Assembly: GCA_048013815.1 (NCBI GenBank)
Contig: CM106586.1
Coordinates: 6,634,001-6,698,000 of the forward strand
Length of the DNA stretch: 64,000 nt
DNA from: Setoptus koraiensis
Taxonomy: Eukaryota > Animalia > Arthropoda
Reading direction: 5' to 3'
The translations under genes were made by a program, and so were the position numbers. Position 1 is the first letter of the stretch, and every line of letters begins with the position of its first letter. Under the pieces are notes generated by a model. The model was given only the letters and a program-made list of their open reading frames with translations, was not told the DNA's origin and ran no database searches. Of this stretch, positions 38,749-43,466 are shown piece after piece.

Positions 38749-40536
38749 TTAAGGCATCTTTCTTTTACCTCTAGAACCTTTCTTGTGGCTGGGTTTGGAC
38801 TTGTGGCCAGATTTGGATTTGGTTTTAGATTTGCTCTTGAACACCTTCTTCTTCTTAATCCTTTTCTCTTTTTTCTTAATCATCTTCTTGATTTTTTTCC
38901 TAGAGCTGGGTGCAGAAATTTCAATTTCCTCTTCCACCCTCTTTTTGTTGTTGGTGTGACTGAACTGCTTCTGACGAGATAACAGGGTTGGTGGCACTAT
39001 ATAGTCTGGCATGTCTCTAAGGTGAGGCTGTGATCTGACATTTCGTATTGTTTTGTCATGACGAAGGATTTTTGCGTCATTGGGATTTTGGTTGAAAAAG
39101 CTCTTCAATTTTTCTGAATTCCTCATTTCATTTCGGATCTCTTTAGCACGAGCTTCATGGATAACACTGGTGGTTACAGCCCTGATTGCGTCTCTGGATC
39201 TATATCGAAAAGCTTCCAGCTCCTCCATTTTGAATGCATAGGGTCGAAAAGTTGCGGTGCCGTCGAATGCCTTTTTGATTCGTTCAAAAGATTTGACTTC
39301 ATCTCTGGAAATGAAGGATAAAACAGTTCCCTCGGTGATGTTTGAATTAGTTGCATTAATAGCTCTAGCTGTCCTACCAACTCTATGGATATAGGCATTG
39401 ACGGATGTGGGAAAGTCGAAGTTCACAACATTAGTGACTGATTGAAAGTCGATGCCTCGTGATATTCCATAATCTCTATCCAAATTTTTCTTTTTGGATT
39501 TCTTAGAGTTTATCCGTGTCGTTGGATCTTGAGCACATTTTTCGTCGCAAGCAATAATGATGTCATAAGTCCCCGTGTTGAACCTTTCAACTATATTACA
39601 TCGAGTTGAAACTGGTAGTTCTGGGTTCAGTATACAACTTCGGATTGCAAATTGTTCTAGGAATATTTTCAATTTATAACAACGATTCAATGATTTAACA
39701 AAAATGATTGTCTTTCCTCTTATGAGATTCAACTTGAATAAGGCATTAATCAGGACGAATTTCTCTTCTTCGTCACAACTAATATGGTACTGGAGAAGTT
39801 GTTCACATTCTGGAAGTTCTGGTTCCTCTAACTTGATGACAACGGGTTTGTTGAGAACAAGCTTTTTAAGATTGATGACATCAGGATTGAGCGTGGCAGA
39901 TACTAAAAATGATTGGCACCCTTGGTCGGGTACAGCTTGGGAGATGAGAGTTTGTAGATCTCCTTCAAAGCCGAAGCCAAATAACAGGTCGGCTTCATCG
40001 ACTACGAGATACTTAAGTGTTTGTTTAAGGGTCGTGAGAGCACCACTGCCAATGTGTGCTAAAATCCTTGAGGGAGTGCCTACAATAATATCTGGCTGCT
40101 CGGCTATTAGAAGTGACTTAAGATCGTTCAATTCACCCATACCTAAATCAACTGATTTGATCTCGCGTGAGCAGCAAGATGTGAGCTGTCCAATGTTGGT
40201 GTGAATTTGTTTGCACAATTCTTTGCTAGGAGCCAATATCATAGCTCTGGTCTTTCGTTCTTGATAGGGCTTAGCTAGTTTCTCTTTAAGAATTTGATTA
40301 ACTATAGGTATGACAAAAACTGCAGTTTTTCCTGAACCAGTTCTGGCCCTTGCCAAAATATCGTTTCCTTCAAGGGCTAGAGGTATTGCCTTCTCTTGAA
40401 TAAGTGTGGGCTCACTCCAGCCTAACAGGGCGATTGATTTTAGAAGGCGATCATCAATTCCCATCTCGTAGAATTCTAGTTTGACGTCATCCTCATCGTC
40501 AGAGGATTCCTCAATAAGTTTGTTTTGGCAAATCAT
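38749..40536 (-). CDS. DDX56: DEAD-box RNA helicase DDX56/Dbp9 (595 aa, intronless)
   Basis: Q motif, LARARTGSGKT, LAPSKEL, GTPSR, VVDEAD, SAT, CILNPELP, SRGIDF, YIHRVGRTAR, AFRYRSRDA, LRHDK, PDYIVP. Confidence 0.96.
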   Translation of the reverse strand: MICQNKLIEESSDDEDDVKLEFYEMGIDDRLLKSIALLGWSEPTLIQEKAIPLALEGNDILARARTGSGKTAVFVIPIVNQILKEKLAKPYQERKTRAMILAPSKELCKQIHTNIGQLTSCCSREIKSVDLGMGELNDLKSLLIAEQPDIIVGTPSRILAHIGSGALTTLKQTLKYLVVDEADLLFGFGFEGDLQTLISQAVPDQGCQSFLVSATLNPDVINLKKLVLNKPVVIKLEEPELPECEQLLQYHISCDEEEKFVLINALFKLNLIRGKTIIFVKSLNRCYKLKIFLEQFAIRSCILNPELPVSTRCNIVERFNTGTYDIIIACDEKCAQDPTTRINSKKSKKKNLDRDYGISRGIDFQSVTNVVNFDFPTSVNAYIHRVGRTARAINATNSNITEGTVLSFISRDEVKSFERIKKAFDGTATFRPYAFKMEELEAFRYRSRDAIRAVTTSVIHEARAKEIRNEMRNSEKLKSFFNQNPNDAKILRHDKTIRNVRSQPHLRDMPDYIVPPTLLSRQKQFSHTNNKKRVEEEIEISAPSSRKKIKKMIKKKEKRIKKKKVFKSKSKTKSKSGHKSKPSHKKGSRGKRKMP

Positions 40537-40704: not shown

Positions 40705-41763
40705 TCATAGAGCGATAAGTTTTCCACGTTGTTCTGTTGTGCGCCACGAGAATAATTGATTGGCGCTAAATTCAAATGGATCCAAGTTTTTTGGGTTGCG
40801 TCTTGCCACATAGTCCTGTTGATATTGTTGATGACGATATCGTTGAGGGTCGCCTTGAAAGCTGCCTCTGATATCTTTATAATTGAATTGTTCTCTGTTT
40901 GTTGCCTGTTGCCATTTAGACGGGCCCAGACTGTAACCATTGGACCACACCTGTTCTGGTCTCCTAACACATAGAGTTGGCTGAATGATATTAGAGTTGG
41001 ACGAAAAGGATGGTCTATTCTTTGGACAATATCTCATAGTGTGAGCGTGATCGCCTCCGTTATTCAAGCACAGTGGACAATTGTAGGCGCGCAATCTAGG
41101 ACAAACCACCAATCCTTGTGGATCCTTCAGAACATGGCTCGAATAAACTTGCTCTTTCTCTTGATTGTTCTTGCAAAAAGAACAGAAACGTACACTACTA
41201 GGCCCGGTGCGTCTGTTATACGTGCGCCTATAGGTTGTGGTGGTGGTGGTGGTGGTGTTGAATGTATCTGATTGAGAGAATTCAATTGTTTCACAGAGAG
41301 ATCTATTCAATGATGTTGTTGGCGCCGCCACTAATTGAGATTGTTGTTGCTGCTTATCTTCGTTTTTCTTTGGACAATATCTCATAGTGTGAGCGTGATC
41401 GCCTCCGTTATTCGAACACAATGGACAATTGTAAGCGCGTAACTTTGGGCATAACACTATACCTTGCGGATCTTTTAGAACATGGCTGGTGTAAACACTC
41501 TTGGGTTCTTGGTTGTTCTTGCAAAAGGAACAGAATCGGCTACCACTAGATCCAGTACGGCGCTTATAGGTGCGCTTATATTTGTTGCGAGAACCCGATT
41601 GTTGTTGTTGCCGCTGTAGTTGTGGTTGTTGTTGGTCTTGTTGGTCTTGCTGTTCTTGCTGTTCTTGCTGATCCTGTTCTTGTTCTTGTTCTTGCGATGG
41701 TTGCTCTCGCTCTTGTGGAGATTCACTTGTCTCACAAAGCGATCTATTCGATGTTGTTGACAT
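40705..41763 (-). CDS. nos: Nanos with two tandem nanos zinc-finger domains (352 aa, intronless)
   Basis: Two copies of [10 protein letters not shown]...[35 protein letters not shown], 348 bp apart (about 41535-41369 and 41187-41021). Confidence 0.93.
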
Positions 41764-42477: not shown

Positions 42478-43466
42478 TCAATCTTGATGCTCCCGATGAG
42501 CTTGTTGTTGTTGCTGCTGTTGTGCGGGTGGCCTATTTCCTTGCTGGAAACCGGGAGCTACCTGCACTTCCGGTCTCACAGGTTGCCCGGCCGGGGCTGG
42601 TTGAGCGGCAGGATCTATTGGATTGGGAAAGTTGAATCTCTCGGGCCTATCATCGTCATCAACGACATAGGCCTCGTCAAATCCCAATCTGGTAAATATG
42701 TACTTCAGAAAGCCTGGAGTTTGTAGAACCCTAAAGCCATGTGGTTGTGTTGGAAATACATCTTCGAAGAAATAATAGAAATGACCTACAGCTATGCCTA
42801 TCAGATCAACAACCATTGATCCTCCCATTAGCATTGAAAAGCCTAATATCATCCAAGGTAGATAAGGTGCCTGAAATGTGATCAGACCAAAAAAATTCAT
42901 CCGAACCAAGGGATTTCTTCTGCTCCAAACATATACTAGCATTATAGTGAACGCGTTGCTTAAGAAAAGCAGGTTAACAAAAAATGCTATGATAGTTACA
43001 AGGATCCCCCCAATGAGAAACATATAAAAAAAATCGGCTGTCCTATTTCTATAGAAACTCTCTTCTAACATCCTACAATAACGGTAGGTGAATGTGATGT
43101 TGAAAAAGAAGTTGAATCCAACTGGGCCAAAGAACAGGAACGGTGTCAACAATCTCCAGTACTGGTATTGATAACATTGTCAGTGTCCGGAAAGGGGACA
43201 GACGAGACAAAAAAGACAGCAAGTTACAAATTGGGTGAGTTGTTAGATGGGTAAGTTTGTCTCGGTGAGAAAAAAACCGGGTGAGATTGACTAACTCTTC
43301 TTACCTGGTGAGAGTTGAATATCAATTTTGGATTAAAATATAATTGAAATGGCGTCAACAATTCAATCTGGACCAAACCGGTTGTTACGACGGCCGCCGT
43401 AAGATAACCCCTAGTAACTGGAGGTATTTCATGGTAATCGCGTACCAATGCGTTGAACGCCTCCAT
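42478..43466 (-). CDS. DERL2: Derlin-2 (ERAD rhomboid pseudoprotease), 2 exons, 281 aa
   Basis: Exons 43466-43305 and 43161-42478 (phase 0 intron). [63 protein letters not shown]. Confidence 0.95.

Follow-up and report, generated by a model that had tools for sequence, protein, structure and literature searches.

An intronless mite nanos gene predicted to encode two Nanos zinc-finger domains through internal tandem duplication

Nanos is a germline and posterior determinant with a single (CCHC)2 zinc-finger domain, which binds RNA weakly and acquires its specificity via Pumilio. To our knowledge, nanos is essentially unstudied in mites. Members of the family are recognised, domain by domain, by the pattern C-x2-C-x12-H-x10-C followed by C-x2-C-x7-H-x4-C, and the solved structures closest in sequence to the protein described here are Drosophila Nos in Pumilio-Nos-RNA complexes (5KL1_B, 5KL8_B) and zebrafish Nanos (3ALR). 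In the fly protein, residues F321, T366 and Y369 form the pocket for the base located directly upstream of the Pumilio site (-1U) (Weidmann et al. 2016, PMC4995099). The Pumilio-contacting segment of fly Nos, I376-E385, is placed just after finger 2, binds repeats R7-R8 and diverges outside Diptera (PMC4995099).

The locus under study lies in a window of 64,000 nucleotides (the whole stretch of DNA that was analysed) from the mite Setoptus koraiensis. According to the ORF listing of the window, it is a single, uninterrupted ATG-to-stop frame of 352 codons on the reverse strand (Table 1), which is matched twice by PF05741 (zf-nanos) in the Pfam search, with an E-value of 1.5e-45. The six-frame profile scan of the genome placed both domains in the same open frame. 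Both matches are full-length (model positions 1-54), and their scores of more than 80 bits compare with a curated cut-off of 27 bits. The encoded protein contains four CCHC fingers, two in each domain, and all 8 zinc ligands are present in each domain copy, finger 2 having a spacing of x8 where the family pattern has x7. Judged by its sequence, this ORF is one gene encoding two intact Nanos zinc-finger domains. A DEAD-box helicase ORF on the same strand (38749-40536 (-), 595 aa; Pfam DEAD and Helicase_C) begins 168 nt past the nanos stop codon. On the other side, the ORF 42478-43152 (-) has a Der1-like match (PF04511) and a Gln/Pro-rich tail at its end; it probably represents the final exon of a derlin gene, because the match starts only at profile position 46 and runs onward from there.

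Table 1. Coordinates of the double-domain nanos gene, of the other nanos genes of the genome and of double-domain genes checked in other sources.
Feature	Position	Strand	Evidence or remark
Complete intronless CDS, double-domain Nanos (352 aa + stop)	40705..41763	-	single ORF, two Pfam matches, syntenic orthologue L005 144-1058
N-terminal motif copy 1 (aa 1-14, start codon included)	41722..41763	-	39-nt direct repeat, 85% identical
Gln/Glu-rich low-complexity tract (aa 17-55), unit 1 only	41599..41715	-	TRF arrays of period 6/9/18; AF2 pLDDT <50
Basic pre-domain stretch copy 1 (aa 61-77)	41533..41583	-	within 215-nt repeat; aligns to Drosophila Nos YKR...SR (5KL1_B)
zf-nanos domain 1 (aa 78-132; fingers 1+2)	41368..41532	-	PF05741 83.8 bits; AF2 pLDDT 91-96
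Linker (aa 133-193)	41185..41367	-	coding frame free of stops, no Met; AF2 pLDDT mostly 46-56
N-terminal motif copy 2, inside linker	41281-41319	-	39-nt repeat partner
Basic stretch copy 2, inside linker	41185-41235	-	partner of basic pre-domain stretch copy 1
zf-nanos domain 2 (aa 194-248; fingers 3+4)	41020..41184	-	PF05741 84.9 bits; AF2 pLDDT 95-98
C-terminal tail (aa 249-352), unduplicated	40708..41019	-	long invariant runs vs P0001 after domain 2 and at C-terminus
Conserved last 27 residues of tail	40708-40788	-	alignment with P0001
48-nt identical run, finger 2 of copy 1 (probable gene-conversion tract)	41366..41413	-	partner 41018-41065
48-nt identical run, finger 4 partner	41018..41065	-	partner 41366-41413
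nanos L003	1378-2532; C2:8980260	-	384 aa, x7 finger-2 spacing
nanos L004	1378-1974; C1:5710826	+	198 aa, unusually short x5 spacing, long tree branch
XP_015791221.1 (P0028; UniProt T1KW43)	L007 4001-4960, T. urticae HE587324.1		319 aa; domain DNA identity 90%; continuous ORF checked
P0027	L008 1413-2552		domain DNA identity 85%; continuous ORF checked; domains 90 residues apart
P0033			domain DNA identity 92%; continuous ORF checked
P0032			domain DNA identity 71%; continuous ORF checked; domains 4 residues apart

The extent of the duplication was defined by the repeat search, which found a 215-nt direct repeat (41018-41232 vs 41366-41580; 80% identical, spacing 348) and a 39-nt repeat spanning the N-terminal motif (41280-41318 vs 41721-41759; 85% identical, spacing 441). 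These repeats, together with the two Pfam matches, bear out an earlier note on this DNA, in which two complete nanos zinc-finger domains 348 bp apart and a duplicated N-terminus 441 bp apart had been described. The pair of 16-residue stretches that it had listed, which are the basic stretches before each domain, both read as it gave them, and the one-residue insertion claimed for finger 2 of both copies (C-x2-C-x8-H) could be located by alignment to Drosophila Nos (5KL1_B). The two halves of the protein are 82% identical over 62 aa in BLASTP (E 1e-40), while the DNA identity between the copies is about 77-82%. The duplicated unit extends from the start-codon region to just beyond CPK and contains N-terminal motif, basic stretch and zinc-finger domain; the C-terminal tail of 104 residues is present once, and unit 1 contains a Gln/Glu-rich expansion. 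Because the tail occurs once, the event reads as a tandem duplication inside the gene, covering roughly the first 134 codons, and not as two whole genes fused. A comparison by eye of the 5' UTR with the junction in front of unit 2 revealed no convincing similarity. The description of a head-to-tail fused gene duplicate thus holds as far as a head-to-tail duplication within one ORF is concerned, but not as a fusion of whole genes. About 50 further matches to the Gln/Glu-rich tract, which is of the CAA/CAG type, were found across the genome (75-87% identity), which makes tracts of this kind common here. Apart from these poly-Gln matches, no further copy of the double-domain nanos was found in the 48.7-Mb, two-contig genome, which contains two further nanos genes with one domain each (L003 and L004, Table 1).

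Of the 185 domains in the best 170-odd matches, 84 have the x8 spacing of finger 2. The ten named x8 proteins that were traced all come from mites (Tetranychus, Panonychus, Dinothrombium, Halotydeus, Leptotrombidium, Medioppia (two), Dermatophagoides and Galendromus). The spacing is the marker of a mite-wide Nanos subfamily and not a peculiarity of the window gene. Since it is spread through this subfamily, the insertion is far older than the duplication, in agreement with the order of events that had been proposed earlier from the two copies.

The best database match of the window protein is P0001, a protein of 304 aa which is 56-60% identical depending on the method (60% in the MAFFT alignment). 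P0001 is encoded at 144-1058 of L005, a 1294-bp ENA metagenome contig (ERZ27316339), by a single continuous ORF with two zf-nanos domains, an open and Met-free linker and the same C-terminal tail. A helicase start is located downstream of nanos, at L005 1248, and its first residues match the DEAD-box helicase of the window. Because the same helicase gene follows nanos, L005 is considered the syntenic orthologue. Conservation between both proteins is strong in unit 2 and in the tail, where it includes the block just past domain 2 and the final 27 residues, and far lower in unit 1 and the linker; the sequence after domain 1 lacks the strong conservation seen after domain 2. Moreover, unit 1 of P0001 has neither the poly-Gln tract nor the basic stretch of the window protein, and the divergence of its domain 1 is much greater. 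On these sequences, the two-domain layout appears to be maintained by selection in at least two mite species. The word search and an exhaustive HMMER search both returned P0001 as the sole close orthologue, and no further orthologues came from the scan of metagenome contigs with the back-translated alignment or from a degenerate pattern of the C-terminal motif.

The constraint acting on the domains was estimated by the Nei-Gojobori method on 55 codons, with about 33 synonymous sites per domain. The comparison of the two window domains gave dN 0.098, dS 0.97 and dN/dS 0.10, and that of window domain 2 with L005 domain 2 gave dN 0.098, dS 1.11 and dN/dS 0.09; across the measurable pairs other than that of the two window domains, dN/dS was 0.05-0.09. 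In pairs involving L005 domain 1, dN was about 0.24 (vs 0.09), with saturated synonymous sites. All 8 of 8 zinc ligands are intact in each of the four domains. These values indicate that the domain copies are under purifying selection, and the roughly 2.5 times faster change of L005 domain 1 could reflect a relaxed constraint on unit 1. This last point is central to the best surviving alternative, according to which the duplication is real and translated but neutral, unit 1 being a redundant passenger in slow decay. Such a view would fit the greater divergence of L005 domain 1, the most diverged of the four (69-71% vs 84-85% amino acid identity), the loss of the basic pre-domain stretch from L005 unit 1 and the loss of Cys ligands from the first copy in nanos isoforms of Schistocerca gregaria. 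However, both species keep all zinc ligands and pocket residues, the measurable dN/dS values are about 0.05-0.1, pN is about 0.21 with saturated synonymous sites even in the pairs with L005 domain 1, and the ORF is still open across a divergence that saturates synonymous sites. Neutral decay is therefore regarded as unlikely.

The two copies within the window are not uniformly similar. In their 228-nt, 77%-identical alignment the longest identical run is 48 nt, and the remainder is about 70% identical. Where both copies encode the same residue, none of the last 15 codons differs, vs 20 of the first 43, and a 48-nt run would arise by chance with P of about 1e-4 (codon-column shuffle). The run is a probable gene-conversion tract between the copies. 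Such conversion would also leave window domain 1, window domain 2 and L005 domain 2 roughly equidistant. The four window and L005 domains form one unresolved group in the protein domain tree, and the nucleotide quartet gave informative sites in the ratio 4:3:2 for the timing of the duplication relative to the split from the L005 species. Neither result dates the duplication, because conversion blurs the signal and synonymous sites are few. Given the orthology and the identical layout, a duplication ancestral to the window mite and the L005 species is the simpler reading.

The linker between the two domains is informative for the question of whether both are present in the mature protein. Its 61 codons are free of stops when read in the coding frame, each of the five other frames has 2-8, and a shuffled linker would stay open with P of about 0.04 in the window and about 0.03 in L005. 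Since the linker is without a Met codon, unit 2 should not be translatable separately. An intron or an alternative transcript might nevertheless remove unit 1 or unit 2, so that the mature Nanos would be single-domain as usual. An in-frame GTGAG...TTAG pair (CDS nt 29-433) would excise exactly unit 1, but it is a weak match to the consensus, has no other support and may be due to chance. The linker is, moreover, open solely in the coding frame in two species, with no Met to start unit 2; both domains are under purifying selection; and a continuous layout of this kind recurs in T. urticae and other taxa. Removal by splicing is thus considered very unlikely. Separate nanos genes can lie in tandem: in Galendromus, 12.6 kb contain six single-domain ORFs, two of which are joined by an automated model. 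Here, however, a faulty assembly or the misreading of two neighbouring genes as a single one is hardly credible, because the copies are only 77-80% identical in DNA, differing at about 1 base in 5 where an assembly duplicate would be expected to be near-identical, because neither a stop between the units nor a start codon for unit 2 exists, and because the independent contig L005 from another species has the identical layout. Each of the three alternatives is rated less likely than a genuine double-module Nanos.

An AlphaFold2 model, free of zinc and built on an alignment of 42 sequences, predicts both zf-nanos domains with pLDDT 91-98, and nearly everything else is under 50-70 (pTM 0.32), a picture of two rigid modules connected by a flexible tether. 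Short helices are predicted at aa 311-351 of the tail with pLDDT 50-70. In the Foldseek search against the PDB, the only matches were Nanos structures (5KL1_B, 5KL8_B and 3ALR), with a TM-score to target of 0.76-0.89. The alignment to 5KL1_B indicates that counterparts of the F/T/Y pocket are kept in both window domains and in both L005 domains. Both modules look competent for zinc and RNA binding. Pumilio binding is not readable from the window sequence, because the contact segment of the fly protein is not conserved beyond Diptera; a Pumilio gene, with its PUF repeats in a 1147-codon open frame, is present on contig 1 of the genome, at about 13.916-13.918 Mb. A reading of the 352-aa translation revealed no NIM string of the W-x-D-Y-L type, and the database match P0003 has one. 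Because this motif is missing from several invertebrate Nanos proteins (PMC5207322), it is not family-defining.

We consider it likely that the window contains a real double-module nanos of the x8 type, formed by internal duplication, kept by selection and subject to conversion, with unit 2 as the canonical module and unit 1 as an extra one. Such a gene would have arisen when the 5' two-thirds of a single-exon x8 paralogue, comprising the N-terminal motif, the basic stretch and the (CCHC)2 domain, were tandemly duplicated internally. The resulting single chain would contain two Nanos RNA-binding modules that fold independently, joined by about 60 flexible linker residues and followed by one conserved tail; the two copies would exchange sequence by gene conversion while selection keeps the layout. 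Because only unit 2 carries the conserved tail, the two units, as compared by sequence, do not seem to be equivalent, and the division of labour between them might be as follows. Unit 2 with the tail would act as the canonical Nanos unit, bound to RNA just upstream of a Pumilio site, and the tail would be the part that contacts a partner or acts as an effector. Unit 1 would be an extra RNA-binding module which raises avidity or lengthens the RNA footprint. Through the flexible linker it might also reach a second site on the same mRNA, bridging of Pumilio/NRE sites being one version of this arrangement. A bivalent function, either bridging two Pumilio/NRE sites or a lower dependence on Pumilio, as the earlier note suggested, is plausible.

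The double-domain layout is not restricted to this gene. The exhaustive HMMER search of 1.84 billion representatives returned 1976 Nanos-like proteins at E up to 0.001, and among the best 150 of them about a dozen contain two complete domains. These include the T. urticae protein and three further predictions in which the continuous ORF was checked (Table 1). The call of P0027 treated TGA as a Trp codon, of which three lie in frame; under the standard code, the part between the second and the third of them is still open and contains both Nanos domains. The caddisfly Arctopsyche grandis has a RefSeq-predicted two-domain Nanos of 140 aa (XP_077302215.1, P0037), and P0036, P0057 and P0039 are further predicted doubles; in all of these, as in P0027, P0032 and P0033, both domains are complete by regular expression or Pfam. 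In the domain tree, the domain pair of each double groups with its own near kin; the doubles would therefore have arisen several times. The event in T. urticae is most directly read as young and independent, because its Panonychus citri orthologue (P0131) has one domain. P0131 also has a long N-terminal region which is missing from the T. urticae gene, and which the duplication seems to have replaced there. Besides the domain itself, the T. urticae gene repeats about 60 residues ahead of it. In nanos isoforms X2/X1 of Schistocerca gregaria (P0112/P0171) the whole unit is tandem-repeated and the first copy is minus several Cys ligands, so that these models, judged by sequence, would be a decayed counterpart of the intact mite doubles.

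Other candidates were rejected. The Galendromus occidentalis RefSeq model LOC108864932 (P0002, 443 aa) is a chimera of separate genes, in which two ORFs of a tandem array are spliced together with an unrelated N-terminal part. The array itself (JH620811.1; L006 8050-20611) consists of stop-bounded single-domain ORFs of 135-193 codons. The multi-domain models of a fish (P0029) and of Tuta absoluta (P0031) look like assembly or model artefacts, with repeats that are near-exact in the former and near-exact and partial in the latter. No description of a two-domain Nanos was found in the literature search, which covered one library, so that this absence is not a proof; a 'four CCHC' match concerned Vasa. 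A two-domain Nanos is not categorically new, since such proteins are already present, unremarked, in public protein sets. T. urticae T1KW43/XP_015791221.1, for example, is named only 'uncharacterized' or 'Nanos-type domain-containing protein'. Automated annotation therefore hides real doubles, such as this one, and also invents false ones, such as the Galendromus chimera.

Summarizing, the recurrence of such proteins in mites and their retention under purifying selection constitute the most interesting aspect of these results. It is a speculative and rather doubtful proposal that mites repeatedly and independently evolved a bivalent Nanos, in the window lineage, in Tetranychus and in at least two more lineages, and that it has been maintained for a mode of action absent from single-domain Nanos, e.g., stable RNA binding free of Pumilio or two-site bridging. 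A natural two-domain Nanos offers a ready test of how valency relates to target choice and to Pumilio dependence, and it points to a possible difference between mites and the insect model in the regulation of the germline or axis.

Among the known systems outside the orthologous pair, XP_015791221.1 of T. urticae is likewise an intronless head-to-tail double of the x8 type with a duplicated unit extending from the N-terminal region through the zinc-finger domain, whereas its tail is unrelated to that of the window protein and its domains are 90% identical in DNA. The remaining doubles (P0037, P0027, P0032, P0033, P0036, P0057 and P0039) differ from the window gene in that they belong to different lineages, several have the x7 spacing, and their linkers range from 4 to 115 residues. 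The Galendromus array shares with the window gene the x8 subfamily and the repeated local duplication of a Nanos unit, but there the duplication produced separate ORFs and no fused protein. In relation to Drosophila Nanos (5KL1/5KL8 chain B), the window protein has two domains instead of one, x8 instead of x7 in finger 2 and no recognisable counterpart of the Pumilio-contacting C-terminal helix (I376-E385). Both proteins nevertheless have the same (CCHC)2 domain (E 8e-20; Foldseek probability 1.0), the YKR...SR stretch in front of it and the residues F, T and Y of the -1U pocket.
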